Shown here piece by piece: positions 18,650 to 55,800 of a stretch of DNA of 64,000 nt; within the stretch, counting starts at the first letter, position 1, and every line of letters starts with the position of its first letter. Under the pieces are notes generated by a model. That model did not search any database. It was not told the DNA's origin and saw nothing but the letters and a program-made list of their open reading frames with translations. The translations under genes and the position numbers were made by a program. Source of the stretch: Mytilus californianus (lineage: Eukaryota); the NCBI RefSeq assembly GCF_021869535.1, contig NW_026262679.1, positions 121,768,001-121,832,000 on the forward strand. Direction: 5' to 3'.

Positions 18650-18917
18650 CCTGTTGTTCAGTATGGAAAGCCAACGGGGTCAAAATTGTCAATTTGTAAC
18701 TTGTAACTGTGTAATGTGTACATTTGTGATGTGTATAGTCCCCAATTACAGTAGAAAAGTATTTTTTACAAAAACCAACAACGAACACTAATAAAGGTCT
18801 TAAGGAAAAGGGCATATATTTTAATCTTTATAGCTCTCCTTTTATATTCTTCCTTAAATTCTTCAATAGCCGGGAATTGAGTTTATGCTAAACCGAAAAT
18901 GTTTTTTTTTCTTCATT

Positions 18918-18938
18918 ACTTCCGTTTGGTAACTTCCG
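18918..18938. promoter_or_regulatory. Tandem ETS-like ACTTCCG motifs near the probable PIGO TSS
   Basis: ACTTCCGT at 18918 and 18932, 40-60 nt upstream of the ATG; common in housekeeping promoters. Motif match only. Confidence 0.3.
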
Positions 18939-18976
18939 TAACACCGGCGAAATGTGAAGAAAATTTTCAGGAAAAA

Positions 18977-19728
18977 ATGGGACAAAACTTTAAATGCTTT
19001 TTCCTTTTATGCTTTCTTATCTTACTTTACGTTTGTGGGTTGCTTATATTTGCAAAAGGATTTCTTTTGAAAAGAGTAGTTGTAGAAAGAAACAGTAGCT
19101 GTAAAGTTGACTTTGCCATGCAAAGTGACATGCACGGAGAAAAGGGTTGTTGGATGCATGTCCGTTATAAGAAAGCTATTATAATCGTAATAGATGCACT
19201 AAGATATGATTTCGCTTCATTTGATTCCACAGCAAATGATTCTATTCCATACAAAAATAGATTAAATTTTATTAAAAATTCTCTGATGAAACCAAACAAT
19301 GCAAAACTTTACAAATTTATCGCTGATCCACCTACAACGACACTACAGAGATTAAAAGGCTTGACTACGGGAAGTCTTCCTACATTTGTTGATGCTGGAT
19401 CTAATTTTGCTAGCTCTGAAATTACAGAGGATAATTTTATAGATCAGTTGATTCGCCACAACAAAAGAATAAAGTTTCTTGGTGACGACACTTGGATAGG
19501 ACTGTTCCCTAACAGATTTTATAAACAGATTCCATTTCCATCATTTAATGTGAAAGATTTACATACCGTTGATGATGGTGTTTTGAAACATCTTTACAAA
19601 GAACAGAATAAGAATGACTGGGAAGTGTTGGTTGCTCATTTCCTTGGTGTTGATCACTGTGGACATAGATATGGTCCAAACCATTCAGCTATGAGAGACA
19701 AATTGTCTCAAATGAATGATATGATAAG
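18977..19728 (+). CDS. PIGO: PIGO coding exon 1
   Basis: MGQNF...; TM helix then alkaline-phosphatase-like domain; donor AG|gtaata. Confidence 0.9.
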
Positions 19729-22700: not shown

Positions 22701-25700
22701 TCAACTTGACCAAAATGGTCAGTTGACCCCTTAAGGAGTTATTGCCCTTTATAGTCAATTTTTAACCATTTTTTGTAAATTTTTGTAATCTTTTACAAAA
22801 ATCTTCTCCTCTGAAACTACTAAGACAAATTTAACCAAACTTGTCCACAATCATCATTAGGGTATCTAGTTTAAAAAATGTGTCCGATGACCCTGCCCGT
22901 GAACCAAGATGGCCGACATGGCTAAAAAATAGTACATAGGGTAAAATGCAGTTTTTGGCTCATATCTCTGAAACCAAAGCATTTAGAGCAAATCTGACGT
23001 AGATAAAATTGTTCATTAGGTCAAGATCTATCTGCCCTGAAATTTTCAGACCAATCAGGCAACACGTTGTTGGGTTGCTGCCCCTGAATTGGTAATTTTA
23101 AGAAAATTTTGCAGCTTTTGGTTATTATCTTGAATATTATTATAGATAGAGATAAACTGTGAACAGCAATAATGTACCGCAAAGTAAGATCTACAAATAA
23201 GTCAACATGACCAAAATTGTCAATTGACCCCTTAAGGAGTTATTGCCCTTTATAGTCAATTTTTTACAATTTTCATAAATTTTGTAAATTTTTGTAAATT
23301 TTTACAAAATATTTTCCACTGTAACTACTGGGCCAAGTTCATTATAGATAGAGATAATTGTAAGCAGCAAGAATGTTCAGTAAAGTAAGATCTACAAACA
23401 CATCACCATCACCAAAACACAATTTTGTCATGAATCCATCTGTGTCCTTTGTTTAATATGCACATAGACCAAGGTGAGCGACACAGGCTCTTTAGAGCCT
23501 CTAGTATAATGTAAATAATTCATTCCAATATTGCTGGAAGAGAATAATATGGCATCTGGTAAAGAATTGGAGGTTGCTGCTTCATCACAATCAAAATTGT
23601 CCAAAAATAAATTTGAGCAAAACTTTTCATTTTACTTTCCCTAGGAAGATACAAAGATGATTGCTAATACTTGTACTTTGATATTGTAGAAAGAAAGGGA
23701 CACAATTTCCCAGATAGATTTTGTACCAACCATCTCTCTGCTATTAGGTATACCAATACCTTTCTCTAACCTGGGACAGGTGATAGAGGAACTATTTACA
23801 CACTGCCCATGGTGGCAAACTACCAGCGATATCAAGAAGGTAATTATGAACAAAGCAGTATATCACATTGTAAAAATTTACCAAAACCACAACAATAAAC
23901 TAATAAACTGTTGCTACAGAGATATCAGATATGTGTTGCCTGTGTAAGCTTATCACAAATTTTTAAAGTTTTATTGTACTGACTCCACCTATGTAGGAAA
24001 CAGCAAGCCTGCATCTTGCTTCAGCCTTACTAGCAACTTTAGTTCCAGACGAGACAAAGACATGTATGAGGGATCAAATGTACATTGCATAATATGCTTG
24101 GATACACATACTAAGAACTTAAAAGTTATTAATTACTAAGTCTTGAACAGTGAGTCAGATATTAGTATCTAACTACAGATACAATTAATTGTTTGGTTAA
24201 TTGGATTTTTGTGAAGTATAGGTTCACATATAGTTCAATCAATTGTGGCTATGGGTATGTCTTTAGTCTTGTGATTCCATCTGGCTTCAATTTAGGTTTA
24301 GTTGTGTGTAAGAGTGTTTATAAAGAAAGACAAAACCTTAATTTTTTTTTCCAGTAACCAATTTAAAAGTTTTGGTTACAACAGAAATTAATAATACATG
24401 TATTATTTCTGGAAAACATTTTCATTTTTTAACAAGGTTCTTTACAATATCTGTTGATGCTTAATTGATGTGAAATGCAAGTTTAACAATATTTAAAAGA
24501 TTGCAACTACATTTTTTATTTTATGGTTATGTAATATATTTGTATTAACATGATTAACATATGCGGAAGCTTGTAAATAGCATTTATTGATTTTGTTGTA
24601 CAATTTATTTTTTTTATTAATGATGATTATACAGTAATGTCAGCTGTCATTAGTTGACAAATATTTTAACATTTTGTTGTATTTACAACATATTTGTATT
24701 GTATTGTTACAGAATAAGATACCCTTGAGTATAGAAAAAACAAACGTACAAGAGACTCTAAGTAAATATATTTGTACCAATATTATGCAGACTGTTTATT
24801 GATATACACAGAAGGTATCTTCCATTTCAAAGTTTTGTCAATGTTGAAAATTTTTTAGTTAGCATAGTTCTGAATTTGATTGATTGATAATTGTTGTTTG
24901 CTGAATGTCCAGTGGCAAATATTCCATAAATAGTCAGGATGATTTTGAAAGGAACCTTACTGTTCTACAATCATATAAAAATTTGAAGTTGAATACAAAA
25001 ACATGATATAATTTTTAGCTCACCTGGCCGACATTTTACAATTGGATAAAATTAGTACCCACTGAAAATAAATGAATCTTCAGAATTAGTGATACTAGTG
25101 ATACATAGACGATTAAATTTCATAAAATCATTGTTTACTGAATCCGACAATACTTCAGACAATAAATAGATTTATATCTGTATAAAGATACATTTATTGA
25201 ATGATTTGGTATACAATTGAATGCAGTCTCCTTGTATTGATTTAACTGATGATTACTGTGCTGTGGAAAGACTCCCATAATGCTGAAAAAGGATTTATTC
25301 AGATTAAAAAACTACTGTATTTTCTTTTTTTTAGGTTTATCACAGCACCAAAGCTTTAAGATTGAATGCCAAACAAATCAGTTACTACCTTACATCTTAC
25401 TATGAATACTCTTCAGACTTTCCAATACAAACGTATTATGAACTACAGAATCTTTTAGATCATGCAGAAAAAGACTTACAAGCTTTAGTTACCGCTATGG
25501 TAAAAGATGGAGCAACAAGGGACATTACTGAAGATTTGAAAATTTTGAGAGGCCATTACATTGAATACATATCAGAAGTTGGGAAAATTTGTAAAGGAAT
25601 TTGGGCCAAATTTGATATGATGTCAATTTCAATAGGAATATTGACACTTATTTTGGCGATTTCAACTAATATATATTACATACGAATTTCAGATAGTAGT

Positions 25701-28700
25701 GAGGTACCAAATACTGTGGTCATTTTAATTCTATATTGTGTGGTTTATTTGACTTATGCAGTGTTTCAGACATTTTTTGTGGGAGAAACATTGTCAGCAT
25801 TCATGGTATATATTCTGGCTGTAGTTGGTATTATAATGATATGGATTTTAACCTATAACTTTTCTGCACCTGAAGCAGTACCAGAAACATGCCTTTCGTT
25901 AAACATCAATAACATATTTTCATGGATGATAATGTTACTATATTTTGTATTATTCTTTTCAAACAGTTTTGTAGTGCATGAAGACTCAGTAACTTTGTTC
26001 TATACTCAGACATTATCATGGATATTTTGTTTTAAAAGTATTCAGTCATTTCTAGTCAAATATGATACTTCACAATTGGATCAAAAAGCCAAAAGACACA
26101 AAACACAACATAAAACTTATGATATTATGAGAACTTTGACTCAGCCATCAATATTAGCAATATTTGTGACACTACTTTTAAATGTGCTTGTCAGATTTTC
26201 ATCAAATTTTCGAGCATGTCGTGAAGAACAATGGACTTGTTCTTTGTCACTTTTCCTGTATCCATTAGCTAGCTTACCAGACGAGTTGACTAGCTACAGA
26301 AATGTTAGATACTTTTTTAGTGTAGGTTGTGTCATTTTCTTTCTTCTAGCAATTCGTAAATATGTAAAACATTCTGGAAATTTTCAAGGAAATTCTGCAG
26401 GAATAATATGTATAAAATACATATATCCTGTATGTGGTGTTGCAATTGCTTTGCACTGGGCTTTGCAAGGACTACCTCAGCCAATACTTGATGCTTTACC
26501 AGTGTGGCAACAGATATTTTTGCCAAGGCTTGTGTATATACTTCTATTTATATCATTCATAGCTACCACCATTAAACCATTAACGATTCATCTACTACCG
26601 AAACAGGAGAAATTTTCTGTTCAGGCTGATGGGACTGTTATACCACAGGTTTACAACAAAATCAAGCAAAACTTTAAGGATGAGAAAGAGGCTGAGCATC
26701 CACCAATTGTGTTTGGTCTCGGCACAACATACTCGTCAGCGCTGATCAACTTTGTTGTGATCTTCTACTTATTACTTGTTCTGCTGTTGGGAGATGGCAC
26801 TTCACCTAGCCTATTATTTGCATTTTTATCAGTTTGGTTATTTTTAGAAGTATATACAGCTTCAGTAACATTTACAAAGATGGTTTTCTCAGGAGATGAA
26901 AGTTCAGGATTTGGGTTGACAAAAGCATGTAAGTGTTTTTTCACATACGACTATTCATACTTAAGGACAAAGGTAGAATAGATGAAATTTAAATTCATGT
27001 ATTTCCCGTTCATTTTCTATGTCACAATGCTTATGTTATTATTGTATGTCGCAATGCTTATGTTATTGTATGTCACAGTAAGAACCAATAGTTCAATGAC
27101 TTCATGTACACCGAGGTCCTCAGGTCAATTGGGGTAACTCATTCATAAAAAAACCCTCAAGATTGGTCTATATGGGGCAATCAGAGATAAAAAGCTGATG
27201 AGTCATGGGAAATATTTTTAAACTAATGTTATACTGAAATATATGTTGTAAGATATACAGTACAGATGTTAAAAAGAAAAATGTTCCATCCAAGCTTACC
27301 ATTAGGCATACACCTAACATGATGTACACAGTTGATATCAACTGTTGACATTTATTTTATTTCATTATGTTTTTGAAAATATCTTGATAATCTGATGGAA
27401 CCATGATAGCATCATTGTAGGAAATTGGGTTCAAACCCCAGTCTAACATGTCTGAATAATCCAAAGATTCTAAAATTGGTATTCACTACTTCACCACCAA
27501 ACACACAATTTTTTGAAGAAAGAGTTAATACTGGTTAGCTTAGAGTCAGACCAATATACCTGTATCCCATTAGGATATCATGTCCTTGGATCTGTAACCT
27601 TGTGAGGTAGCATTTAAAAATGCAGCTCAGAGTGTTAGTTTAGTATTTAGCTGTGCATCTTTATATTACATTAACATGTTAACTTTCTGAATATGATTGT
27701 AATACTTGCCACTGGATAGACAGTCATCAATCTATCAGTTTAACCGAATTATTTTTATTTGTAGGTAAAGTCAATAACATTTGGCCACCTGTAGTGTTTA
27801 TGTCAACTTTGTTCTCTTCATATTTTTATTTGTAGGTAAAGTCAATAACATTTGGCCACCTGTTGTGTTTATGTCAACTTTGTTCTCTTCATATTTTTAT
27901 TCTACTGGACATCAAGCTGCAGTACCATCAATTAAGTGGGAATCTGCATTTACTGGTTTCCATGGTGATTTCGACTACAATGTTATTCCTGCTATTCTGA
28001 TCACTTTAAACACTTTTGCGGCAGAGGTATTCTATAGTGTTCTGTGTCCACTGCTTGTCATATGGCCACTGACCGATGGATTGTTTCTTAAATCCATGGC
28101 AACAAAGAAGGAAGAACCTGGACATTGGAAGGGGGACTTCCTTTTATTGGAGGATGAAGATGTGTTTAAGCAGATGTTGTTTAGACTCTTTTCTTCCATG
28201 TTTTTTTTTCAGGGAATCAAGGTAAAGTTCTAGAAACTATCTTAGGTTACAAGTATTTTAAATAAAGAGATCTTAAGTAAAAATAAGAAGATGTGGTATG
28301 ATTGCCAAAAAGACAATTCTCCACCAGAAACTAAATGATGTAGAAGTTAGCAACTATAGGTCACCATATGGTCTTCAACAATGAGCGAAACCCATGCCGC
28401 ATAATGCATCTATTGATAAACACAATGTAGAACTTGTTGATTGATGATTGCTTCATGCGGTATCAAAATGTACATGGCTCATGTATTATGAATTTTTCAA
28501 ATCTTTGGGAGAAAAAGGCTGTTAATTATCAGTCATGATTTTTGTCTCGCGATCGCCTGCGACGAAAGTTGTGGAAACCAAGACATAGGGATTGCTTTTC
28601 TGGGGATGGCTGCAGCGGTGGCGTCAACAATTGTTAAGTTTTCTGCTTAAGTTAAATAGTTGATAGGAACTAATTGTGATAGATCATTGATATTTAATAT

Positions 28701-37884: not shown

Positions 37885-40800
37885 GTAATGAGATTTCATT
37901 GTTTGTTATCATGTTTATTGAACATTTCTTCACTTTTAAATTTTCCATAATTTGTTCTCAACATGCTGTGCAATTCTAGAAAAAAACGTGCTTCCCATGC
38001 TATCTAACAAGCAAAAGAATGGCAATACATGTAATACATTAACCCGGTTTGGCACAACCCACCAAACAGAATGATTCCAAAATGAGTTACAGTGGAATCC
38101 CCTGTTTCTGTTCGGCTAGTGATATCACGCATTACCTGATTTCGTCATATCTACTCTGTTTCTTAAATAGAATTGTTTTTGTAATTGTTTTAGTCTTTCT
38201 AAGGGACAGAATAGATTAAAATTATAAAATACAAGTATAATTGCAATCCCATGATTAACCATTTTCCATAAAAATTAGACATTATTAGAGAAAAATTGGT
38301 TTCATTTCATGGCACATTTTATCAAACTGATAAAAACTTTTGCTCTGCATCCTTGGCAGTCTCTTTGGTTCAAACTGAACTCTTATTTCGAAGTAAAAAA
38401 TCCTTCCATTAATAAAAATAAACTATTTTTAGAAGGCATGCACAAACATCAGCGGACAATTGAAAACCGGTCAGAACTTGGGTTTACCTAATTTTGGACA
38501 CACATTACACAAATGCATAAAGGTGAAATCATACATTGAGAAGATTTTGTGAAAATAAAGTATTGTAAGGTACTGGTGAATGTTATACTGAAACAAATAG
38601 GTATTAAATTGTGCGGTGTAATTTATAAGTAAATACTTAATTTGTGGCAAGACTGACACATATTTTATAATGATTTTTTACAATTGTGGCAGTAATCCAC
38701 TATACTTATTACTATGATCACAAGTCAAAATTCAAGTTTTTACCAAATATTATCTTTTAAACTTAACGGTTGTGTTCTTGCGCATAGTAACTTGGCTTGC
38801 AGCGAGCTAGAGAAACATTTTACATTTGAAATCAAAGATATGGCATTAATTTACTATTTTTTTATGGATTTCACAGGCCAAAGTTTCACTTTTTGCCAAT
38901 AAATTACAGGGGGAGGCATTTCATTAGCTAAAACATAGTTTTACAAGTAAGGTGTGTACATATGTTGGTACAAAGGTGATATATATCCAGTAAAGCAACT
39001 GATTTTATGTGAAAGCTCTGGAATTTGAAATGATTTTATCATTGTTTACATTTTTTGTGTACAAGTGTTACGGCAGGGAATGTATGTAATTACTCATGGA
39101 TTACCTTCTTCATGCTATATATCATGTAATTCCCGTATTAAGGATCATTTCTGGTAACCAAATATTCATATTTAAACGTCTGATATGCCTGGTATACATA
39201 GGGAAATACTTTAACTGCAATTGTTTACTGACCGGCGATTTTGCCGTCTGCCATTTTGTGGGGAATGAAACGTTGATTTTATCTCTTTTGATACAAATTC
39301 GTCCCCTGATCAATTGATCTAATATTGCATTTTTAATACCACACATTTAATATTTTATAAGTATACCCTGCCGGACACAAATATATTGTAAATATTTAGA
39401 TGGTTGTAATGAACTATGTTATATGTTATTTACTTTGTATGTTCTTACGCAGATCGTCTGCTAAATCAATGCGCGCGCAGTGGTGTCCGATTGTTTATTT
39501 CAAGCTTCTTTATCGATATTTTAGATGCTATAGCTTTGTTTTAATATTTTATGTATAAGGACAATCATAGGACAACTCAAGATGATTTCAATTCTATGTT
39601 TTTCAATATCGTAATTTTGTATAGTTCCGGCTACCCGGAAAGGACAAGTAACCATTGGATTAGTATGTCACGTGACACTTACAATTTAGTATATAAACGC
39701 GTGAGCATTCAGTAATGGCAGATAGCCCAAAGTTTTGCTGGCGGCAAGTTTGAACCTAGAAAACAATAAATTTCCAAATAAAGCAGTAATAACCTTTAGG
39801 TGAGAATTAGGATAACATAATGAAGTTTAAATAGCCGTCTTTTGTACAGTAAGCTATCTCCCACCACGTCGGACACCACAAATATATGTATTTTAGGATT
39901 TATTATTCAGTACACTTGAACGCTATTGTTTATTTATATAAAATCATATAATGTTATATGATTTTTTTTAACAGTTCAGCAAATAAAACTGTTAGCATTG
40001 AAAAGATCACTTTATTTTATCAAACTTGGATACATTCAAAAAGTATTTGCATTTACACTGGTAAAACAACTTGAGCTGGAGGACGCTCGTTCGAAATTAA
40101 AAACTATGGAAAGCCGTTAGCAACATAAATAGCACAGTAACAAATAAATACAAAGGAAGCCGTTTAATACACATACATTAACCAAACAGAGGAACTATAT
40201 TTAAACACAAACTGAGGTGCTCCGGGGAGCAGATACTGCATTTTATGAGTGTTCGTATGTAAACTGCCCAGTATAGGACAGGATACTCTCGGGTGGCTTA
40301 CAATTTGGTGTCAGAAGTGGGATGCTAAAATTCTAATTAGCATCCAGGATACGAACCTTGGAATAACCTGTCAACTTAACAATGTGGTTTAAGCCCGACG
40401 TGGTGGATTTACTGTACAAAAATTAATTATAACTAAAAAAATATGAAACAACAAATAAAATTAAAAGTCTTTATTTAGAATATGGCTGATGCTGGTAGGA
40501 ACTCCCCAGACCCTGAAATAAATTTCCGTAGGGAAAGGGATTTAGATGACTTAGGACAAGGGGATCAAATACATACTGATGACAATGACGACTTTGATAG
40601 GGAATCTATTTTACAAGGTCATGGTGATGAAATAGCTCAGAGACCTAAAGGACGGGATGAATATCAGAGACATGATTTTGATGATAGGAATGATAGGGGT
40701 AATCATAACATGCAACCAATTGGCCCACCAAAGGTAACACTTAAACCTGAACCCTTCTCTGGGAAGGATTGTTGGGAGGAATACTTGTCGCATTTTGAGG

Positions 40801-43800
40801 ACTGCGCTGAATTGGGACAATGGGGAAATCGTACAAAACTGTTGTTTTTGGCAGCTAGCTTGAGGGGTCAAGCAAGGACATACTACATGAGCTTGTCTCC
40901 TGACGACAGGCGCACATACCAAATGCTAACACAAAAGTTAGATCAAAGGTTTGGGAGTTCAAAACACAAAAATCGTTGGCTCTCAAAGTTAGAGATGCGC
41001 AGGCGCATGCCAGGGGAAAGCATAGCTGAAGTGGGGGATGACATAAGGCAATTAGCGCAAAAGGCGTACTATGACCTTGACTTAGCAGCGCAGGAGTCTC
41101 TAGCATTAAACCAGTTGTTTAAGGTAATACCTGTAGAAATGAAATGTCGCTGTATTGACAAGGAATGTCAAACAATAGCAGACGCTGTTGATGTTATAGA
41201 AAGATATGAGTCAATACTCGGGGATGGAGACAAAAAGAAATCAACAATCAGAGCTGTGGAGTCGAAGGACATCGAAGGACACATGAGTGAAAAGGATTAT
41301 CAGAGCAATTTGCAGGCTTTACAAGATAGGATAGCAAAGCTGGAACAAGGACACGGGAATCGGGATACAAAGAGGGCAAATACTGGCAGGTGTTACAGTT
41401 GCAACTCACCAGACCATTTTATGAGGAACTGTCCACACAAAAACAACCAAAGAGCAAGAGGGAACTTCCAGGGCAACCAAAGACACAATACCTCTTTTAA
41501 TAATAACCAGGGAAACGACAGAACGCTGGCTCAATAGGTCGTGAGTTAGTGACAGAAGATAAAAGGCCTGATATAAAGGGAGAAAAACATGTCCGGACAG
41601 GACATATAGGGGAAACAGATGATAATTGGGATAATGGGTTTTATACAAATGGGTTAATCTATGGGTTTCCTGTCAACTTTTTAATTGACAGTGGCTCAAC
41701 AGCGTCAATATTATCTATTGAGGTTTACGAAAAATTGCCTTTAAATGTTTGGTGTTCTTTAGTGCCAAACAAGTCCGAAGTATTTGACGTTAATGGCAAC
41801 AAAGTTTTTGCTATTGGATCAATCACATTAGAACTAAAGCTTGGTCTAGAAAATTTCAGTCAAAATTTTATGATATGTAATATAAATCAGGATGGAATAC
41901 TTGGACAGGATTTCTTACTTAAGGAAGTAAGTAAAGTTAATTATCAGCGAATGGTCTTACACACGATCCACAACCAGGAAATACAATGTTGGATTGGAGG
42001 GAAGGCAAATATGATTTGCAGAGTAGAAATTAAAGACAACATGACAATTCCTCCAATGACGAGTACTATGATGCCTGTAGAAATACCGGGTGTAAATCAT
42101 TTAACAGAATACGGATTAATAGAGGGCACGACAGGAACAGCAAAGTCTACATTAGCAATACCTGGGATTATAAATACAAAAGATCAAGCACACTTTGTTA
42201 ATGTTGTCAACTATGGTGACGACGAAGTTAAACTGTATAAAAAGGAAACAATAGGAACATGTGAATCATATACTGAGCATGATTTGAAATCAGAGCAGAT
42301 TAGAACACTACAAGAAGATTGCTTTACAGCTGGTGAAGAAATACCAGAACATCTTATTGACTTATTAAAAAGGAGTTCAACTTATTTAAATGAAAACCAA
42401 AGACAACAGCTTTCCAGACTCCTTTCACAGTACCAAAATGTCTTTTCACGGACAGATGATGACATAGGGAGGACAGACCTTGTAACACATAGAATAAATA
42501 CAGGAAATGCAATACCCTTTAGGCAAAGATCTAGACGTATGCCACTTGGAAAGCAAGAGATGGAAAAATCAGAAGTCAACCGGATGTTGGACAAAGGAAT
42601 CATTGAACCATCTTCTAGTCCTTGGGCATCGAATATTGTCCTTGTAATGAAGAAAAATGGCAGGCCTAGGTGCTGTGTTGATTACAGAATTTTGAATGAC
42701 GTCACTAAAAAGGATTCCTACCCGATTCCGAGGGTAGACGAGTGCCTAGACTCGCTCGCTGGGGGGAAATTCTTCGGGTCAATGGACCTAAATTCAGGAT
42801 TTTGGCAAATTGGCATGGCTCCCGACGACAAGGAAAAGACCGCATTTCTGACAAGTTTAGGGTTATATCAATTCACTGTCATGCCCTTTGGACTTGCAAA
42901 TTCCCCATCTACTTTTGAGCGTCTTATGGAAAATGTTCTCAGAGGGCTACAGTGGAAAGAACTATTACTCTATATGGACGATATCATATCAGTAAGTTCA
43001 ACATTTGAAGAGGGTCTTGGAAGGTTAGAAAGAATCTTTATACGCCTACAAAATGCACATCTAAAATTGAAACCTGCCAAATGCATTTTCTTTCAAAAAC
43101 AAGTCAGGTTCCTTGGACATATCGTGTCTGAGGATGGAATTTCCACCGATCTAGAGAAAACAAAAGCTATAGATGACTGGCCAATCCCCAAATCTGCAAA
43201 ACAGGTGCGCAGCTTTTTAGGACTTTGTTCTTACTATAGGCGATTTGTTAAGGGATTTGCAGCAATTGCAAGACCAATGCACAAAATTTGCGAAAAGAAT
43301 AGCCGTTTTGCTTGGAATGACGAGTGTCAAAAGGCATTTGAACAGTTGAAAAATGCTTTAACAAGTACACCTGTGCTTGCCTACCCTCTTCCAAATTTGC
43401 CATTCATACTTGACACAGATGCAAGTGATAAGGCTGTCGGGGCAGTTTTGTCACAAATTCAAGAGGGTCTTGAACGAGTTATTGCATACATGAGCAAATC
43501 TATGAACATACATGAGCAGGCATACTGTGTAACTCGAAAAGAGCTACTTGCTGTAATTATAGCACTAAAGACATTTCATCATTATTTATATGGCCAGAAA
43601 GTTTTGCTGCGCACAGATAACGCAGCTGTATCATGGATGAAAAATCTAAAGAAACCCACTGGTCAAACAGCCAGATGGCTCGAAGAACTGGGAACTTACA
43701 ATTTGACAGTGACACACAGGGCTGGAAGGAAACACTCAAATGCCGATGCTCTGTCCAGAAGACCTTGTAAATCATGCGAGAAACAAGAATCTGGAAACCA

Positions 43801-46800
43801 CACAAGTGACGACGAAACAGACGAAATTCAACTTGAAGAATCTGATTTTGTTAACCAGGAGTTACATGAAAATGAGGAGCCAACACCAAGAATAGAAATA
43901 GTACGAATATGTACAAGAAGTCAGACAGGAAATCAGTCTAGTGCTACACCAAGTGGCTATTGCATAGAAGGATGGGACCCTGACAGTATTAGACAATGCC
44001 AATTGGAAGACCCAGACATGTCACTCATTGTGACATATCTTCAAGAAAAGAAAAATAAACCTGACTGGGACCAAGTATCAAAAGGAACATCATACCAGAA
44101 AACAATATGGCGACAATGGGATAGGCTGACAATAAACAATGGCATGCTTTATAGAAAATTTTATTGTTCTGATAAAGACGATGTAGACAACTTCAAATTG
44201 CAGCTCCTGGTACCAAAATCACACCAAAAGACAGTCTTTAAGTATTTCCATGACGTTCCATCTGCAGGTCATTTAGGACCAGATAAAATGCTAAGTAGGA
44301 TCCAGCAGCTCTTTTACTGGCCAGCTATGAGAAGCTCAATAACAAGGTACTGCAAAGAATGTGACCAATGTGCTGCTAGGAAATCACTTAAACGAAACAA
44401 GGCTCCATTAGGTCAATACTTGGTTGGCGAGCCTATGGAACGTGTTGCGATTGATATTCTTGGTCCACTTCCGTTAACAAAACGACAAAACCGTTATGTT
44501 CTTGTCCTTTGTGACTGCTTTTCTAAATGGACTGAAGCATATGCTATTCCGGACCAGGAATCCCTGACCATTGCCCGGACCATCGTGAATGAATTTATTT
44601 GTAGGTTTGGTTCACCATTACAGCTTCACTCTGATCAAGGAAGGTCTTTTGAAGCAAAGCTGTTCCAAGATCTGTGTGATCTCCTGAAAATTGACAAAAC
44701 TAGAAGTACAAGTCAACACCCCCAATCTAATGGAAGCGTTGAAAGATTTAACAGGACACTGCTAAGCATGCTAACATTTTATTGTCAAAATGATCAGAGA
44801 AACTGGGATGAGATTTTGCCACAGGTTATGATGGCATACAGATCATCAGTCCACGCCAGCACAGGACAGACCCCTAACATGATGATGTTTGGCAGAAACA
44901 TATTTCTTCCTATGGAAGCTGTTATTCCACGTCCTGATGGACCAGATGAATCCACTACCCCTGAAACGGATAAATATATAAATGAATTACAGGACGCTAT
45001 GTTAAAGTCACATGTACTGGCTAGGAAACATCTTAAGCAGAATTCTGAGTATCAAAAACGTCACTATGACTTGAAAGCAGTAAAGCGCGAATTACAAATA
45101 GGTCAAGCTGTATGGCTTTATGATGCATCAAAGAGAAAAGGAATTTGTCATAAGTTGACACTAAAATGGAAAGGACCATATGTTGTCACAAGGAAAATTG
45201 ATGACATCACTTACCTTGTGAAAAGGTCAAAGAAACAGCCAGGGAAGGTCTACCACATCGATAGACTACTGCCCTATCAAGGACGAAATCCGCCCACTTG
45301 GTTCTCCAGTAGGAAGGCCTGAGATGCCTTTCATAGTTGTTGTTTGAATAGCCGAAATTAGTTGTACAAGTTGTTACGTTTTTAATTGTTTTGATGAGTT
45401 ACTATGTTTAAGAGTAACTGTATGACTTATCTCAGACTGGAGAAAGTCATGTTGGAATTCCTAGAGTTGGATCCACTCTGGAAGAATATGTAAGGGAGAC
45501 AAATGGCCATTGTTTCTCAGGACATATTATTGGCTGTAAGGGAAGGATGATCCTTCCTGCCAGGGGAATGGCAGATTAAACTGTACTGCCAAGCGTTTTA
45601 TTTTATGCGCAAGCTGCGCGGCGGAAAGCAATTAACGACAACTTTTTGTCTTGAGGAGGCTTGAGATTTTTTTTAATAGGGAGACCAAGGGGGTGGATAT
45701 CATATTTTTTATTGAAATGTAGGCTGATCCATTTACTACCAGCATATGCCATATGGGGGGAGGATTTTAAAACACATAAGCAAATATAGTCACACAACAG
45801 CACACTACATACATATCTTTTATTGTATATGTTATATAAATGGTGGAGGGATTTTAAAGATTTGATTCGATTTCAGAATGAGACCATCATCACAAGTGGA
45901 GGTGAAGTGTTGGCTGTGTCCCATGACGTTTAGGACAAGGAGACAACTAAAGAACCATCTGGCAGCTGCCCCACACAAACGGCTTTCAGTCGTTTGTGTT
46001 TGGTGTCCTGAAGAGAAGTCGTACAGGAGGATGGTTGACCTGAAGGAGCACATCATGGCCAACCACCGCAGCAAAATAGAGATCATGCCGTACAGTTTCT
46101 TGAGTGAGAACAATGGGTTTTGGATGTCGAATTACCCAGAGACATATGCAAAGGTAATCTCACCATCAAATGAAAACTCCCAAGAGGCCATGAAAGCCAG
46201 GATTGAGGTCCTAGAATTCCTAAACAGGGTTGGAAACACCAACAGGAAGAAGGAGGATTGGACTCAAGGCTGGAAGTGTCCTAGGGAAATGGTTAGAGGT
46301 ACGCAGGAGGAAGAGGTTGAGCAGGAGAAAACCAATGGGTCATATTCACCAACACGCCCCACCATTTATGAAGGGCTGGCCCTCCAGCAACTTACATTAG
46401 GACTTGGGGATTCGACAGCCATCTTCAAATTAGACCTTGGAGTGTCTATACGATTCTATCAGATAAGTTTGAATGACTTGGTTCTAAGAGATCACAAAAT
46501 GCTTGATGCTTTAATAAGGAGGATGACGGCACTGGTAAACACCAAGTATGCAGGATCACATACCTTCTCAGCCTCTATAGACGGTAAATTAAAGTCTATA
46601 GTGACGCCGGTAGTAGCTAGGAAACTATCCATATCAGAGGAATATATAGCAGACATAAAAACGTCCGATGAACTCTTCCCAGGGAAACATACAATAGCCA
46701 TCACAAATCCGTTATCACCACTTAAAACACCATCAACCTCAGATATTATATTGGAAGATGACAGTGACAATGAAGAACCAGAGATTCTGAACGAGAAAGC

Positions 46801-49800
46801 AACAAGCCAGAAGAAAAGTAAGAAGACAGAGAATGAAGGAGAGAAAAATGGAGAGAAAAGAAAGAAAAAGAATAACCACCAGGAACAGAAGGCTAAGAAA
46901 ATAAAGCAAGGAAAGGGTGACAAGGAACAGGACGAGGAAATCAGACTTAAAGAGGAAGAACTAAGGAAGCAGGAAAAACAAAAACAGGATGAGGAAATGA
47001 GACTACAGGAGGAAGAACAAAAGAGAAGGGAAGAACAGAAACAGGAGGAAATTAGACTGAAGGAGGAAGAACAAAAGAAGCAGGAAAAACGAAAACAGGA
47101 CGAGGAAGTCAGACTAAAGGAGGCAGAACTAAAGAGAAAGGAAAAACAAAAACAGGAGGAGGAAATCAGACGGAAGGAAGAAGAACAAAGGAAGCAGGAA
47201 AAACAAAAACAGGATGAGGAAATGAGACTAAAGGAGGAAGAACAAAAGAGAAGGGAAGAACAGAAACAGGAGGAAATTAGACTGAAGGAGGAAGAACAAA
47301 AGAAGCAGGAAAAACGAAAACAGGACGAGGAAGTCAGACTAAAGGAGGCAGAACTAAAGAGAAAGGAAAAACAGAAACAGGAGGAGGAAATCAGACGGAA
47401 GGAGGAAGAACAAAGGAAGCAGGAAAAACAGAAACAGGACGAAGAAGAAAGGTTGAAGGAGGAAAAGAGGATACAAGAAGAAAAACACAATGAAGAAAGT
47501 AAAAGAAAGGAACTGGAAGCATCAGAAGATCGGGGCACAGATTGTACAACTCTAAACGGCAACATTACCGCAAGTGAACGGGCAAGGACACTTCTGAGGA
47601 AAGGTGGCATGCCACTTTTCCCAGCTGGGAGAAGGGAGTGGAATCAAGAAGAAGTCATCCCACTGATTACCATCCCAGCAGTTGTTAGTTGGCCACCTAA
47701 AAATTGGAAAAAGATGACTCCAGAGCAAAAGTATTTTAATTGGGAGTATGCCAGTATAGCTCTGGAGTTGAACTCGGGAAAGCAATTACAATTCACAAAG
47801 GAAGAGTTGCTACTCAAGTATCACTTTTTAGCATTACCAGGCACAAAAACACCGACAGGAAGTGAAGAAAACACAATGGCAACCAAATCTCGGTTTTATT
47901 TATATCAAGCTTTGGCTTATATAATAAAGAGTGACAAAGAAGACACATCAACTGTACAAACATTAAAGATGTTAGAAACTGCAGTGAAGGAGAGAGATAA
48001 CTCCACAGACGATGTGATAAAGAGAATAGATGCTCTTGATATTCCCTTGAGACTCGGAGAAGACATTGAACACTAACATTTTAGATCTCAAACTTCATAA
48101 TAATTATGTGCTAAAATTTTCAATTCAGGAGAATTCATTGTCTTTAAAGGTGGGGGAAGTGTAAGGTACTGGTGAATGTTATACTGAAACAAATAGGTAT
48201 TAAATTGTGCGGTGTAATTTATAAGTAAATACTTAATTTGTGGCAAGACTGACACATATTTTATAATGATTTTTTACAATTGTGGCAGTAATCCACTATA
48301 CTTATTACTATGATCACAAGTCAAAATTCAAGTTTTTACCAAATATTATCTTTTAAACTTAACGGTTGTGTTCTTGCGCATAGTAACTTGGCTTGCAGCG
48401 AGCTAGAGAAACATTTTACATTTGAAATCAAAGATATGGCATTAATTTACTATTTTTTTATGGATTTCACAGGCCAAAGTTTCACTTTTTGCCAATAAAT
48501 TACAGGGGGAGGCATTTCATTAGCTAAAACATAGTTTTACAAGTAAGGTGTGTACATATGTTGGTACAAAGGTGATATATATCCAGTAAAGCAACTGATT
48601 TTATGTGAAAGCTCTGGAATTTGAAATGATTTTATCATTGTTTACATTTTTTGTGTACAAGTGTTACGGCAGGGAATGTATGTAATTACTCATGGATTAC
48701 CTTCTTCATGCTATATATCATGTAATTCCCGTATTAAGGATCATTTCTGGTAACCAAATATTCATATTTAAACGTCTGATATGCCTGGTATACATAGGGA
48801 AATACTTTAACTGCAATTGTTTACTGACCGGCGATTTTGCCGTCTGCCATTTTGTGGGGAATGAAACGTTGATTTTATCTCTTTTGATACAAATTCGTCC
48901 CCTGATCAATTGATCTAATATTGCATTTTTAATACCACACATTTAATATTTTATAAGTATACCCTGCCGGACACAAATATATTGTAAATATTTAGATGGT
49001 TGTAATGAACTATGTTATATGTTATTTACTTTGTATGTTCTTACGCAGATCGTCTGCTAAATCAATGCGCGCGCAGTGGTGTCCGATTGTTTATTTCAAG
49101 CTTCTTTATCGATATTTTAGATGCTATAGCTTTGTTTTAATATTTTATGTATAAGGACAATCATAGGACAACTCAAGATGATTTCAATTCTATGTTTTTC
49201 AATATCGTAATTTTGTATAGTTCCGGCTACCCGGAAAGGACAAGTAACCATTGGATTAGTATGTCACGTGACACTTACAATTTAGTATATAAACGCGTGA
49301 GCATTCAGTAATGGCAGATAGCCCAAAGTTTTGCTGGCGGCAAGTTTGAACCTAGAAAACAATAAATTTCCAAATAAAGCAGTAATAACCTTTAGGTGAG
49401 AATTAGGATAACATAATGAAGTTTAAATAGCCGTCTTTTGTACAGTAAGCTATCTCCCACCACGTCGGACACCACAAATATATGTATTTTAGGATTTATT
49501 ATTCAGTACACTTGAACGCTATTGTTTATTTATATAAAATCATATAATGTTATATGATTTTTTTTAACAGTTCAGCAAATAAAACTGTTAGCATTGAAAA
49601 GATCACTTTATTTTATCAAACTTGGATACATTCAAAAAGTATTTGCATTTACACTGGTAAAACAACTTGAGCTGGAGGACGCTCGTTCGAAATTAAAAAC
49701 TATGGAAAGCCGTTAGCAACACAAATAGCACAGTAACAAATAAATACAAAGGAAGCCGTTTAATACACATACATTAACCAAACAGAGGAACTATATTTAA

Positions 49801-52800
49801 ACACAAACTGAGGTGCTCCGGGGAGCAGATACTGCATTTTATGAGTGTTCGTATGTAAACTGCCCAGTATAGGACAGGATACTCTCGGGTGGCTTACAGT
49901 ATGTTATGAATTTTTTCACAATTTTTTATCTGATTTTTGTTTTTATGAGTTTACCGAAGTGAAACCAAACATCTTAGGTGCGTGGATACACTGGATTGCA
50001 CCGTACTAACCCTTAAAGAATTCGCAGTTTCAGAATCTAATGAATTTTGGGTAATATTTTCAAAAGCGTACACAGAAACTTTGTGATTGGCTTAAAGCGT
50101 CCTCAACAATTGATATTTCATGATGTCATTATCATTTTGGGGTAATAAAATTACCCCAATCCTTTAGATGCTGACACTGTGAATTGTAGTCCTAATAAGT
50201 ATGACAATATACAACATTTTTGTACAAAGCACCAAGCAATTTTTATACGTGGACACAAAACAAATTTTGCTCTCAACTTTGAGATTCAAATATTTTTACC
50301 ATGAAGTTTTTTCTGATAGCTAGAAATGTTTACACATATACAAACTGCTTTCTCTTTGCCTAATGGGGCAAAATATTTCTCAAAATATCCAAAATTTATG
50401 ATTAATTTAGTTAAAATTCCAGCCGAGATGAAGATGACCCATTTAAAAAAAAAAACTATTTCCCAAAATCCTCACTTCCTAGAGTATAAAATAAATCTTT
50501 AAACCAATATCCGTAAAATTTGACTCACCTGAATACCAGGATAACATAAATTAAATGTTAGGAAATCTGATCAGGTCCATCAAATTTTATGGAGTTTGGT
50601 TTGTAAAGAAATAAAATAGCCTTACTAGAAGTCATAATTGTTTATCCTGTTTTGGACCTTTTGATTCTGAAATAATGATTTTCTTATCTTACAGGTTCAT
50701 TATAACCATGTTACAGGGAAAGTTAAAAATCAGAAAAGCACAAACAAACAAATAAGGAAAGTTAATAATCAGTAAAGCAAACATCCTTAAAAGATCCCGG
50801 ATACACATACTTTATGAAATTTCTCATTATCTGTTTGTTTGATTTTACAGAATTAATTTACTGTGGTAAAAAATTACAAGACAATCAACCATTAGAGGGT
50901 GCTGGTTTAAAAGCTGGTGCTACAGTTTTTGCATTAAAGAAATTTGTTGCAGAGAAAGATGACTCACAGGGTAAATTTTTGTTATAACATTACTTAAAAT
51001 GCATAGATTATATCATTTCATGCAAAGTGTAGAATATATCATTACATAACATGTGTAGAATATATCATTACATAACATGTGTAGAATATATCATTATATA
51101 ACATGTGTAGAATATATCATTACATAACATGTGTAGAATATATCATTATATAACATGTGTAGAATATATCATTACATAACAAGTGTAGAATATATCATTA
51201 TATAACATGTGTAGAATATATCATTACATAACGTGTGTAGAATATATCATGACATAACATTTGTAGAATATATCATTACATAACATGTGTAGATTATATC
51301 ATTATATACAAAGGGTAGAAGATATTTAATGTTGATAAGAATTGCATACTAGTAGAAGTGTAAAAAAGTAAATTGAATTATTGTCAAATGTTCAATGCTT
51401 CAAAATTTTGTAGATTTACTTCACAGCATATTTAAATCTATTAAAGCAGTAGAATAATCTTATAACATGTGTTTTAAGCTCACCTTTCTTTAGCCATCAC
51501 TTGGCGTCCGTCGGCGTCGTCCGTCTGGTGTAAACTATTTCAAGCATCTTCTCCTCTGAAACTACTGAACCAATTCCAACCAAACTTAAGCTAAATGATC
51601 TTTAGGGTATCTAGAATAAAGTTTGTGTTTTATTTTTTGTTTCATCAAAAAACATGTACGCCATGGCTAAAAATAGAACATAGGGGTAAAATGCAGTTTT
51701 TGGCTTATATCTCAAAAACCAAAGTAGTTAGAGCAAATCTGACAAGGAATAAAAGTGTTCATAAGGTAAAGTTCTATCAGCCCTGAAATTTTCAGATGAA
51801 TCTAACAACCCATTGTTGGGTTGCTGCCACTAAATTGGTAATTTTAAGGAAATTTTGCAGTTTTTATACGACCGCAAAAATTAAAAATTTTTTGGTCGTA
51901 TATTGGTATGACGTTGGCGTCGTCCGAAGACACATTGGTTTTCGCACTCTAACTTTAGTTTAAGTGAATGGATCTCCATGAAATTTTACCATAAGGTTCT
52001 ATACCACGAAAGGAAGGTTGGGATTGATTTTGGGGGTTATGGTACCAACAGTTAAGGAAAAAGGGGCCAAAAATAAGCATTTTTGTAACTTCCAGACAAT
52101 AACTTCTGTGTAAGTGTATGGATCTCTCTGACATTGTACCACAAGGTTCCATATCACAAAGGGAAGGCTGTTATTGATTTTGGGGGTAATTGCCTCAACA
52201 TTTTAGGAATTAGGGGCCACAAAAGGGGCAAAAAACAAGCATTTTTCTAGTTTCATGACAATAACTTGTGTGTAAGTGTTTGGATATTTCTGAAATTGTA
52301 CTACAAGGTTCCATATCACAAAGGGAAAGCTGGAATTGAGTTTGGGGGTAATTGCCCGAAACGTTTAGGAATTGGGGGCCAAAAAGGGGCCAAAAATAAG
52401 CATTTTTCTAGTTTCCAGACAATAACTTGTGTTCAAGTGTATGGATCTCTCTGAAATTGTACTGCAAGGTACCATACCACAAAGGGAAGGCTGGGATTGA
52501 GTTTGGGGGTGATGAATCATAAGGGGGTTCAAAAAATTTTTTGGGGGGGGCAGGGATTTTTTTTTTTTTTCTTTTTTTTTCTTTTTTTCCTTTTTTTTTC
52601 TTTTAAAATTTTCCATTTTAAGTTGGTTATTTCTGATTTATATTTAAAAGCAAATAATAATGATATGGTAGGAGATACACACCAAACAGAATGTGTAAAT
52701 TATTATATAATAAGTATTGTGCAATAGCAAGAAATTTTCAATTGCACAGTATTGCACATTAGCAAGAAATGTTCAATTGCACAGTATTGCACAATAGCAA

Positions 52801-55800
52801 GAAATCTCCAATTGCACAGTATTGCGCAATAGCAAGAAATATCCAATAGCACAATATTGCGCAATAGCAAGAAATTGTCAATTGTACAGTATTGCGCAAT
52901 AGCAAGAAATATTCAATTGCACAGTATTGTGCAAAAGAAGATACTTCGTATAAATTGCTTATTTCTTGATCAATTTCAATAGGGTTTTATTCTTGAATTC
53001 TTGGGGTTCTTTAATATGCTGAATCTAACCGTGTATTAAGTTTTTGGATTTTGGGCCCCGTTTTTAAATTGGTCCACATTGAGGTCCAAAGGGTCCAAAA
53101 TTTAACTTTGTTTGATTTCATCAGAAATTGAATTATTGGGGTTCTTTGATATGCCGAATCTAACCGTGTATTTAGATTCTTAATTTTTGGTTCCGTTTTC
53201 AAATTGGTCTACATTAAGGTCCAAAGGGTCCAAAATTAAACTTTGTTTGATTTTAACAAAAATTGAATTCTTAGGGTTCTCTGATATGCTGAATCTAAAC
53301 ATGTATTTAGATTTTTGATTATGGGCCCAGTTTTCAAGTTGGTCCAAATCGGGGTCCAAAATTAAACTTTGTTTGATTTCAACAAAAATTGAATATATGG
53401 GGTTCTTTGATATGCTGAATCTAACCATGTATTTAGATTTTTGATTATGGGCCCAGTTTTCAAGTTGGTCCAAATCGGGGTCCAAAATTAAACTTTGTTT
53501 GATTTCAACAAAAATTGAATATATGGGGTTCTTTGATATGCTGAATCTAACCATGTATTTAGATTTTTGATTTTTGGGCCCCGTTATCAACTTTGTCCAC
53601 ATTGAGGTCAAAAGGGTCCAAAATTAAACTTTGTTTGATTTCAACAAAAATTGAATGTATGGGGTTCTTTGATATGCTGAATCTAACCATGTATTTAGAT
53701 TTTTGATTATGAGCCCAGTTTTCAAGTTGGTCCAAATCGGGGTCCAAAATTAAACTTTGTTTGATTTCAACAAAAATTGAATATATGGGGTTCTTTGATA
53801 TGCTGAATCTAACCATGTATTTAGATTTTTGATTATGGGCCCAGTTTTCAAGTTGGTCCAAATCGGGGTCCAAAATTAAACTTTGTTTGATTTCAACAAA
53901 AATTGAATATATGGGGTTCTTTGATATGCTGAATCTAACCATGTATTTAGATTTTTGATTATGGGCCCAGTTTTCAAGTTGGTCCAAATCGGGGTCCAAA
54001 ATTAAACTTTGTTTGATTTCAACAAAAATTGAATATATGGGGTTCTTTGATATGCTGAATCTAACCATGTATTTAGATTTTTGATTTTTGGGCCCCGTTA
54101 TCAACTTTGTCCACATTGAGGTCAAAAGGGTCCAAAATTAAACTTTGTTTGATTTCAACAAAAATTGAATGTATGGGGTTCTTTGATATGCTGAATCTAA
54201 CCATGTATTTAAATTTTTGATTATGAGCCCAGTTTTCAAGTTGGTCCAAATCGGGGTCCAAAATTAAACTTTGTTTGATTTCAACAAAAATTGAATATAT
54301 GGGGTTCTTTGATATGCTGAATCTAACCATGTATTTAGATTTTTGATTATGGGCCCAGTTTTCAAGTTGGTCCAAATCGGGGTCCAAAATTAAACTTTGT
54401 TTGATTTCAACAGAAATTGAATTATTGGGGTTCTTTGATATGCTGAATCTAACCGTGTATTTAGATTCTTAATTTTTGGTTCCGTTTTCAGATTGGTCTA
54501 CATTAAGGTCCAAAGGGTCCAAAATTAAACTTTGTTTGATTTTAACAAAAATTGAATTCTTAGGGTTCTTTGAATGCTGAATCTAAACATGTATTTAGAT
54601 TTTTGATTATGGGCCCAGTTTTCAAGTTGGTCCAAATCGGGGTCCAAAATTAAACTTTGTTTGATTTCAACAAAAATTGAATATATGGGGTTCTTTGATA
54701 TGCTGAATCTAACCATGTATTTAGATTTTTGATTTTTGGGCCCTGTTATCAACTTTGTCCACATTGAGGTCAAAAGGGTCCAAAATTAAACTTTGTTTGA
54801 TTTCATCAAAAATTGAATTCTTGGGGGTTCATTAATATGCTGAATCTAACCATGTATTTAGATTTTGGATATTGGACCATAATAGGTGAATGTCCAATTT
54901 AAAATTTTTAAGTTCTTAGACCACATTCATTCTGTGTCAGAAACCTATGCTGTGTCAAATATTTAATCACAATCCAAATTCAGAGCTGTATCAAGCTTGA
55001 ATGTTGTGTCCATACTTGCCCCAACTGTTCAGGGTTCAACCTCTGTGGTCGTATCAAGCTGCGCCCTGCGGAGCATTTTGTTGGTTATTATCTTGAATAG
55101 TATTAATGTTAAAGATAAACTGTTAACAGCAAATATGTTCAGCAAAGTAAGATCTACAAATAAGCTTATATGACCAAAATTGTCAATTGACCCCTTAAAG
55201 AGCTAATGCCCTAAAGGACAATTTTACACAATTAGTTTATCATGTTTTCTAACTTTAAAAAATCTTCTCCTCTGAAACCACTGAACCAATTCCAACCAAA
55301 CTTATGCTGAATGATGCTTAGGGTATCTAGAATAAAGATTGTGTTTTATTTACTGTTTCGTCAAAAAACATAGCCGCCATGGCTAAAATTAGAACATAGG
55401 AGTAAAATGCAGTTTTTGGCTAATATATCTCAAACACTTAAGCAATTAGAGCAAATCTGATGTGAGGTTAAAATGTTCATTAGGCCAATTTCTATCAGCC
55501 ATGAAATTTTCAAACGAATCTAACAGTCCATTGTTGGGTTGCTGTCACTAAATTGGTAATTTTAAGGAATTTTGCAGTTTTTATACGACCGCAAAAAAAT
55601 TTTGTGGTCGTATATTGGTATGACGTTGGCGTCGTCGTCGTCGTCCGAAGACACATTGGTTTTCGCACTCTAACTTTAGTTTAAGTGAATGGATCTTTTT
55701 GAAATTTGACCATAAGATTAAATACCACAAAAGGAAGGTTGGGATTGATTTTGGGGGTTATGTTACCAACAGTTAAGGAATTAGGGGCCAAAAAGGGGCC

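Follow-up and report, generated by a model that had tools for sequence, protein, structure and literature searches.

The window analysed here is a stretch of 64,000 nucleotides from Mytilus californianus (RefSeq assembly GCF_021869535.1, contig NW_026262679.1, positions 121,768,001 to 121,832,000 of the forward strand). It contains a complete Ty3/Gypsy element of 11,335 bp at 38564-49898, in which gag, pol and a third open reading frame (ORF3) are all open and no gene is broken. In a bivalve Ty3/Gypsy lineage ORF3 is a genuine third gene, retained over deep divergence, and it is almost certainly an accessory gene of the element maintained by selection. Its product has an N-terminal domain (N-domain) that includes two zinc fingers of predicted C2H2 type, a linker, and a C-terminal domain (C-domain). 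An earlier note, made from the sequence of the window, had described an uninterrupted frame of 732 codons, from ATG to TAA, at 45878-48076 on the forward strand, and had placed it between the integrase (IN) and the polypurine tract (PPT), as part of the mobilised unit. Both statements are borne out: the frame is present in the sequence and lies in an intact Gypsy element, inside two long terminal repeats (LTRs) of 1739 bp. The observation is thus confirmed, while the interpretation offered with it, a nuclear nucleic-acid-binding accessory protein, is partly supported. The parts of the element are the following.

38560..38563 (+): target-site duplication, 5' copy, GTAT
38564..40302 (+): 5' LTR, 1739 bp, TG..CA ends, 1 mismatch to the 3' LTR
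39797..39805 (+): donor-like site TAG/GTGAGA in the LTR, only a candidate 5' splice site
40305..40357 (+): primer-binding site (PBS, ~40305-40324), with a short hairpin and a tract similar to the complement of a tRNA T-arm after it; kept in all lineages examined
40482..41537 (+): gag, 351 aa, intact; Pfam zf-CCHC and Retrotrans_gag, both matches slightly under the Pfam cut-off
41510..41516 (+): GGGAAAC slippery heptamer, inside the 31-nt gag/pol overlap at 41507-41537
41549..45322 (+): pol, 1257 aa as listed, intact; protease (PR), reverse transcriptase (RT), RNase H and IN (H2C2, rve, p58_C)
45842..45850 (+): purine-rich GGTGGAGGG motif, PPT-like, ~30 nt upstream of ORF3
45860..45877 (+): acceptor-like site, a pyrimidine-rich tract and CAG, then one base before the ORF3 ATG
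45878..48076 (+): ORF3, 732 aa, intact accessory gene, ATG to TAA
48146..48159 (+): PPT, directly 5' of the 3' LTR
48160..49898 (+): 3' LTR, 1739 bp, pairing with the 5' LTR
49899..49902 (+): target-site duplication, 3' copy, GTAT

The assignment to Ty3/Gypsy is based on the paired LTRs with TG..CA ends, the target-site duplication, the PBS, the PPT and the order PR-RT-RNase H-IN in pol. The single mismatch between the LTRs indicates a young insertion, with an estimated age in the order of 10^5 years under an assumed generic neutral rate; no second copy of the element is present within the 64-kb window.

Genomic context was examined at twelve loci (L001-L012). Every full-length locus among them carries an ORF3 homologue in the interval from IN to the 3' LTR, with pol identity down to ~39-57%. 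In L001, L009, L002, L006 and L007 the series gag-pol-ORF3 is flanked by near-identical LTRs; the same series is present in L012, and pol followed by ORF3 also occurs in L003, L008, L010 and L011. Related elements from no fewer than three bivalve orders keep the gene in this position. The placement of homologues had been proposed in the earlier note as a check on its claim, and the hits indeed fall between IN and the 3' LTR of diverged elements and are not single-copy host genes. Identities of pol to the window, agreement between the two LTRs of each copy and the state of the genes are given below for the loci where they were recorded.

L001 and L009 (ENA assembly): pol 57-58% identical in amino acids; LTRs ~1483-1485 bp, 99.9%; gag, pol and ORF3 open in L001; gag and pol open and ORF3 interrupted at least once in L009
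L002 (M. edulis, OY782959): pol 52% identical in amino acids; LTRs ~1025 bp, 99.9%
L003 (ENA ERZ21930238): central copy with pol interrupted at least twice and ORF3 at least once; next copy with pol interrupted at least three times
L004 (ENA ERZ26052378): ORF3 with one or more interruptions; gag and pol absent from the vicinity
L005 (Logan SRR23477409): a single large internal deletion, which spares gag, PR and the C-domain of ORF3
L006 (M. edulis): pol 95-97% identical in amino acids; LTRs 98.5%; one large internal deletion in pol; gag and ORF3 open
L007 (Potamilus streckersoni, Unionida): pol 39-56% identical in amino acids; LTRs ~1760 bp, 96.9%; pol interrupted at least twice; deposited ORF3 gene models differ from the straight translation, interruptions likely
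L012 (M. coruscus): pol DNA 94-97% identical; deposited ORF3 gene models differ from the straight translation, interruptions likely

Matches to both ends of ORF3 are found in five Mytilus species, and several gene models contain them as fusions with integrase or with RT/RNase H. The closest protein match, 99-100% identical, is the Mytilus californianus RefSeq model P0012, annotated as 'neurofilament medium polypeptide-like', a label evidently due to its E/K-rich repeat. L008 is a 6.8-kb contig deposited under a Candidatus Thiodiazotropha metagenome-assembled genome (MAG); it was taken as lucinid host DNA, because this bacterium is a symbiont of lucinid clams. Proteins P0187-P0191 and P0106, from contigs that carry the end of IN and ORF3, were also deposited as Thiodiazotropha MAG proteins and probably represent mis-binned host DNA. 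At L003, a tandem array contains at least three related copies in head-to-tail arrangement.

An origin of ORF3 as a passenger, i.e. a captured host zinc-finger gene without any role in the element cycle, appears extremely improbable. A homologue with no pol within 10 kb and close to hAT transposase fragments does occur at L004 and could be taken in its favour; however, the finger-coding part of this copy sits upstream in another frame, so that the copy is itself interrupted and lends no support to a domesticated host gene. Furthermore, ORF3 occupies the same position in elements as diverged as those listed above, which excludes a one-off capture, its frames are intact in young copies and under strongly purifying selection, and no host-gene-like homologue is present among the named matches.

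Selection was measured as the ratio of nonsynonymous to synonymous substitution rates (dN/dS) between the window and the M. edulis copy L006, with aligned segments handled one by one and nothing joined.

gag: dN/dS 0.15, dS 0.25
pol, two segments: dN/dS 0.06 and 0.12, dS 0.16
ORF3 N-domain: dN/dS 0.065, dS 0.88
ORF3 C-domain: dN/dS not computable, dS saturated (proportions of nonsynonymous and synonymous differences, pN 0.18 and pS 0.75)

Purifying selection on ORF3 is as strong as on pol. Neutral evolution of the gene, for which the earlier note would have expected a ratio of ~1 across copies, was rejected, since the value in the N-domain (~0.07) is far below 1. The ORF3 protein evolves faster than pol, with 34-60% versus 44-73% identity in the same pairs; this is one of the points in favour of a counter-defence factor, which would neutralise host silencing (e.g. 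piRNA or chromatin) by means of the C-domain or of a disordered motif. Accessory proteins of complex retroviruses often counter host defence, and a conserved short linear motif is indeed found in a disordered region of ORF3. Conversely, there is no sign of positive selection in the measurable pair (dN/dS 0.065), the most conserved residues are located in the cores of the folded domains and the fingers would be left without explanation; on balance, a counter-defence role is improbable.

In the same pair the synonymous divergence of ORF3 is several-fold above that of gag-pol, and nucleotide identity drops along the element: it is 93-97% in leader, gag and pol, 91% in the gap between pol and ORF3, 82-87% in the ORF3 N-domain, 73% in the C-domain and 81-87% in the LTR. 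This decrease indicates that the 3' module, formed by ORF3 and the LTR, has a history different from that of gag-pol, as recombination would produce when RNAs of two subfamilies are packaged together. The linkage of ORF3 with the LTR is uninformative on function, because ORF3 and U3 are physically adjoining. However, since the histories differ, even if in one pair, ORF3 can do without a tightly co-adapted gag-pol; its exchange relative to gag-pol fits a partner belonging to the host or a cis-acting element, without identifying it.

The ORF3 protein is organised as follows; structure models cover residues 1-310 (AlphaFold2) and the C-domain, residues 560-732, and predicted local distance difference test (pLDDT) and predicted template modelling (pTM) scores refer to them.

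45878..46303 (+): N sub-domain 1, residues 1-142, fingers plus helical part, net charge +9; pLDDT mostly >90
45908..46066 (+): fingers 1 and 2, both of C2H2 type, at residues 11-33 and 40-63, respectively
46346..46672 (+): N sub-domain 2, alpha/beta in the prediction, residues 157-265; no relative known
46712..46777 (+): linear motif conserved in the family, LSPL-x-TP-STS with a hydrophobic and acidic patch after it; predicted disordered, pLDDT <50
46856..46870 (+): basic run KRKKK, residues 327-331, candidate nuclear localisation signal
46913..47557 (+): E/K/R/Q-rich linker, residues 346-560, including a 57-nt tandem repeat; lineage-specific
47555..48073 (+): C-terminal domain, residues 560-732, family hallmark; pLDDT 92.6, pTM 0.86

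The two fingers have exactly the spacings reported in the earlier note, with ligands C11-x2-C14-x12-H27-x5-H33 in the first and C40-x2-C43-x14-H58-x4-H63 in the second, and these ligands are almost invariant across the family; the hydrophobic core of the fingers is conserved as well. In the model of the N-terminal 310 residues (mean pLDDT 83, from a 46-sequence alignment) both fingers are predicted to adopt the beta-beta-alpha fold and to pack with helices in residues 1-142. Pfam searches with the window protein and 46 members returned C2H2-type families only, and the N-domain alone scored 26.4 bits against zf-C2H2 (cut-off 25.2). The family profile compared with PDB sequences retrieved only tandem finger pairs, from CTCF, ZBTB, Tramtrack and ADR1 (E ~1e-4, profile positions 4-65). 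Judged by spacing, predicted fold and profile matches, these are genuine C2H2-type fingers. A profile hidden Markov model (HMM) built from the N-domain alignment, and used only for domain detection, matched 59 of the 66 listed representatives of at least 400 aa, most of them with both fingers. Among the 40 members in which both fingers could be parsed, finger 1 varies at the positions that would contact bases (7-10 residue types each), while positions -1 and +3 of finger 2 are almost fixed (two residue types each), a pattern that fits one variable and one constant recognition element, although it is only suggestive. The basic run KRKKK and the C-terminal motifs named in the earlier note are also present. 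Residues 266-310 are predicted to be disordered, yet the columns of the linear motif are almost invariant in the family alignment.

The C-domain is mostly helical in the prediction and folds as one compact domain; in longer proteins it is found at the extreme C-terminus. An exhaustive HMMER search with this domain gave 248 clusters (50% identity) at E up to 0.001, and 133 at E up to 1e-10. Foldseek found nothing with E <1 for the C-domain, either in PDB (template modelling (TM)-score up to 0.22) or in BFVD (TM-score up to 0.28), and nothing with E <0.1 in PDB for the N-domain, which was queried as a two-part model.

Several of these searches bear on whether the gene could be a disguised env (envelope gene) or another known component of retroelements. 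No likeness to an envelope, to a fusion or attachment glycoprotein or to any other annotated protein of transposable elements was found in Pfam, PDB sequences, PDB folds or BFVD folds, in agreement with the non-env nature claimed at first and with the structure search suggested then as a check. The absence of signal peptide and transmembrane segment, also part of that claim, holds as well, the highest 19-residue Kyte-Doolittle average being 0.94 and the N-terminus hydrophilic. Identity as env was therefore rejected, given that only the env-like position and the acceptor-like site agree with it; a duplicate of the element's own gag or pol was rejected too, because ORF3 has no similarity to either and the C-domain no match to solved capsids. 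The same data make it very unlikely that ORF3 is a structural or transmission protein, i.e. a particle component or an envelope substitute aiding cell-to-cell spread: the position of env and an env-like expression signal are in favour of it, but a signal peptide, a transmembrane segment, fusion-protein similarity and resemblance to gag or pol are all missing.

The linker between the two ends of the protein requires a separate description. Charged residues make up 69% of the stretch ~346-560 and hydrophobic ones 12%. It includes a tandem repeat of nine 57-nt units (19 aa each) at 46926-47446, in which a higher-order unit of 225 nt is found at 95%. The E/K/R/Q repeat of ~180 aa indicated in the earlier note thus exists, as 9 x 19 aa, but the charged stretch in which it lies is longer, and the idea of a charged helical spacer as a conserved part of the protein does not stand. 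Across the family the linker measures ~0-377 residues and is E/K-rich in a minority of members, and the type resembling ER/K helices is limited to few lineages. Since the linker varies, what is conserved is the fingers with the N-domain at one end and the C-domain at the other, joined by a free linker; the charged repeat is a local feature. In composition the window linker is more like an ER/K single alpha-helix than a coiled coil; together with its variability across the family, this led to the rejection of a coiled-coil spacer as a conserved feature. In L002 the linker is rich in Ser, Thr and Pro and of an uncharged type; this copy is inserted in an array of ~2-kb tandem units. An antisense frame at 46492-47610 was discarded as a gene, being a Ser/Phe/Leu-rich low-complexity mirror of the linker repeat, hence an artefact.

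Two ordered modules, joined by a linker free in length and composition, are also the arrangement that could be expected of an integration tether, where the fingers and N-domain would bind chromatin or DNA and the C-domain, which the linker would keep at a distance, would bind integrase or the pre-integration complex; the logic is that of host tethering factors, which join a chromatin reader to a helical integrase-binding domain. The basic finger module with its KRKKK run and the mostly helical C-domain agree with this role. A further point in its favour comes from L005, a 4.9-kb contig in which gag is followed by PR fused in frame to the ORF3 C-domain alone; this locus is an internally deleted derivative that retains the C-domain. 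Insertion sites offer less to the tether. The window, L001, L006, L007 and L009 have target duplications of the sequence GTAT, ATAT (in three cases) or ATAC, while the pair of L002 is imperfect; they point to a short, RTAY-type preference, and no wider target sequence is shared among the 6 insertion sites. A 4-bp preference of this type can come from integrase alone, thus no tether is needed to explain it. Moreover, one pair shows an exchange of ORF3 with respect to pol, which would be unexpected for a tightly co-adapted partner of integrase, and no fold match to a known integrase-binding domain was found in PDB. A tether is therefore a less likely role, although it deserves more credit than the other alternatives considered here.

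Indications on how ORF3 may be expressed come from the region just upstream of it. A pyrimidine-rich YAG is located zero or one base 5' of the ORF3 ATG in all ten loci with a readable conserved start, from 8 independent lineages; for L001 and L009 the start concerned is the second Met, which corresponds to that of the window. The background frequency of the whole pattern is 5.9% among all 9973 ATGs of the same sequences, giving P ~1e-10 for 8 lineages out of 8, and the remainder of the gap between pol and ORF3 is barely alignable between lineages. This conservation of an acceptor-like YAG directly before the ATG suggests that it is a 3' splice site and that ORF3 would be translated from a spliced subgenomic mRNA. 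As for the donor, the window and the L001/L009 family share an identical TAG/GTGAGA island, ~500-530 nt from the end of the LTR, despite otherwise diverged LTRs; donors were scored with an approximate matrix, derived from general knowledge and used for ranking only. The GGTGGAGGG motif precedes ORF3 in four Mytilus-type families (window/L006, L001/L009, L003) and is absent from L002, L007 and L008; it may act as an internal PPT or in splicing.

Taken together, the features of the protein make it probable that ORF3 is a nuclear nucleic-acid-binding adaptor, and the chances are about even that its role is the control of the element's own expression. Translated from a putative spliced subgenomic mRNA, with the 3' splice site directly before the ATG, the protein would enter the nucleus and bind the nucleic acid of the element, with the fingers and the basic sub-domain making the contacts; LTR DNA or the conserved leader RNA may be the target. 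Once tethered, the C-domain and the conserved motif of acidic/phospho type would recruit a partner, and expression would be controlled either by activation of the LTR or by release of unspliced genomic RNA for export, two options to which roughly equal weight can be given. A nuclear location is suggested by the basic run and the finger module. The net charge of +9 of N sub-domain 1, the KRKKK run and the profile matches to DNA-binding finger pairs all argue for this adaptor, and the only candidates for a constant target conserved across lineages are the PBS/leader block, the LTR ends and PPT-like purine motifs.

Other considerations weigh against it. Two fingers alone provide little specificity, C2H2 fingers can also bind protein, and the linker between those of ORF3 is not of the canonical DNA-binding type. 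The hallmark C-domain has no recognisable function, no canonical splice donor is found at a conserved position in the leader across the loci compared, and the different histories of ORF3 and gag-pol in one pair of copies have also to be considered.

Like the env of errantiviruses and retroviruses, ORF3 is placed between IN and the 3' LTR and has a probable spliced subgenomic mRNA, with the acceptor near the start codon; unlike env, it lacks signal peptide, transmembrane anchor and fusion similarity, and carries zinc fingers, a basic module and a run resembling a nuclear localisation signal, so that the protein is probably intracellular and nuclear. An extra gene at the 3' end is shared with foamy virus Tas, HTLV Tax/Rex, lentiviral Tat/Rev and MMTV Rem, which derive from spliced RNAs and have nuclear roles directed at the LTR or at unspliced RNA; however, no sequence or fold similarity to ORF3 was detected for any of them. 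ORF3 is also much larger than most regulatory proteins of complex retroviruses, and Tas, Tax/Rex, Tat/Rev and Rem are not known to use C2H2 fingers. With the two-finger modules of Tramtrack and ADR1, and with CTCF and ZBTB, ORF3 shares finger spacing, the predicted beta-beta-alpha fold and profile similarity, but it differs in having two fingers only, a non-canonical linker, a helical sub-domain and an unrelated remainder.

Another parallel is found in CERV, a non-env accessory protein of Cer1, an element of the Gypsy family in C. elegans; CERV is nuclear, is produced from a spliced mRNA and is required for the export of genomic RNA (PMC10309623). Both proteins are non-env and lineage-restricted, with structured domains and flexible linkers, and CERV has a KRKK-type run and a cysteine-rich candidate finger; its origin from a spliced mRNA and its nuclear location are matched in ORF3 only by the acceptor-like site and by the run resembling a nuclear localisation signal. 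On the other hand, CERV is a 5-exon product that shares gag exons and contains a GTPase-like G domain, whereas ORF3 is a single frame after pol; neither ORF3 model matched a GTPase-like fold, a distinction drawn from the published description of CERV. By analogy, CERV may serve as a working model for ORF3 function.

Non-env additional frames are a known category (PMC5408684, PMC7264820, PMC10309623). LTR elements of bdelloid rotifers have non-env ORF3s with GDSL esterase or DEDDy exonuclease domains, ORF3s of LTR elements being typically expressed from spliced messages (PMC5408684), and additional frames are found in plant LTR elements (PMC7264820). ORF3 resembles these in being a family-specific, non-env sense frame after pol; unlike them, with their enzymatic or transmembrane/coiled-coil features, it has C2H2 fingers and two domains without known relatives. 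The present gene is apparently undescribed: no description was found in the literature on bivalve Gypsy ORF3 or on C2H2 ORF3 of LTR retrotransposons, a survey of mollusc LTR elements makes no mention of ORF3 or of a third frame, and a study of metazoan env-carrying Gypsy elements, in which molluscs are mentioned in passing, makes none of a third frame or zinc fingers.

Non-env extra genes of animal LTR retrotransposons have rarely been characterised, Cer1 CERV being the one worked example found, and here a large, unnamed protein family (248 clusters) is attached to one Gypsy lineage across bivalve orders. It could offer a second, independent system for the study of retroelement self-regulation by own proteins, as well as two candidate new folds, both predicted confidently and unmatched in the libraries searched. 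It is conceivable, though somewhat short of an even chance, that this bivalve lineage is a 'complex' retroelement with its own sequence-specific regulatory or tethering protein, composed of a two-finger reader and two new folds, expressed from a dedicated spliced mRNA and evolved independently of vertebrate complex retroviruses and nematode Cer1. The family is also of use for annotation, since these frames are now filed as 'C2H2-type domain-containing protein', 'uncharacterized protein', 'neurofilament medium polypeptide-like' or symbiont MAG proteins.

The pol frame starts 31 nt upstream of the gag stop, -1 relative to gag; an overlap in the -1 frame with a slippery heptamer is the usual layout for programmed -1 frameshifting, and the presence of GGGAAAC is consistent with it. 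Some retroelements have a dUTPase between PR and RT, but in this case the Pfam match was weak (E 0.025) and unconfirmed by a search of solved structures, and the assignment was discarded; pol residues 139-235 (window ~41963-42253) also gave a weak match to a Pfam phage ring protein (E 4e-4). The block formed by the PBS, the hairpin and the stretch resembling a T-arm complement is common to the window, L001, L002, L006, L007 and L009. Its conservation between Mytilus and Potamilus points to a primer-binding region that is extended or bipartite. Rfam and ARAGORN detected no RNA family or tRNA in the element, and the window has no tRNA gene.

Outside the element, two frames of 277 aa and 539 aa are present at window 18899-19732 and 25362-26981, respectively. 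The second has a TTG start and no Pfam match. The first, probably a host exon, has at its end part of a type I phosphodiesterase/nucleotide pyrophosphatase domain. Just 3' of the element, at window 50931-53990, there are four tandem-repeat arrays with periods of 26, 35, ~126-136 and ~150-162 nt.

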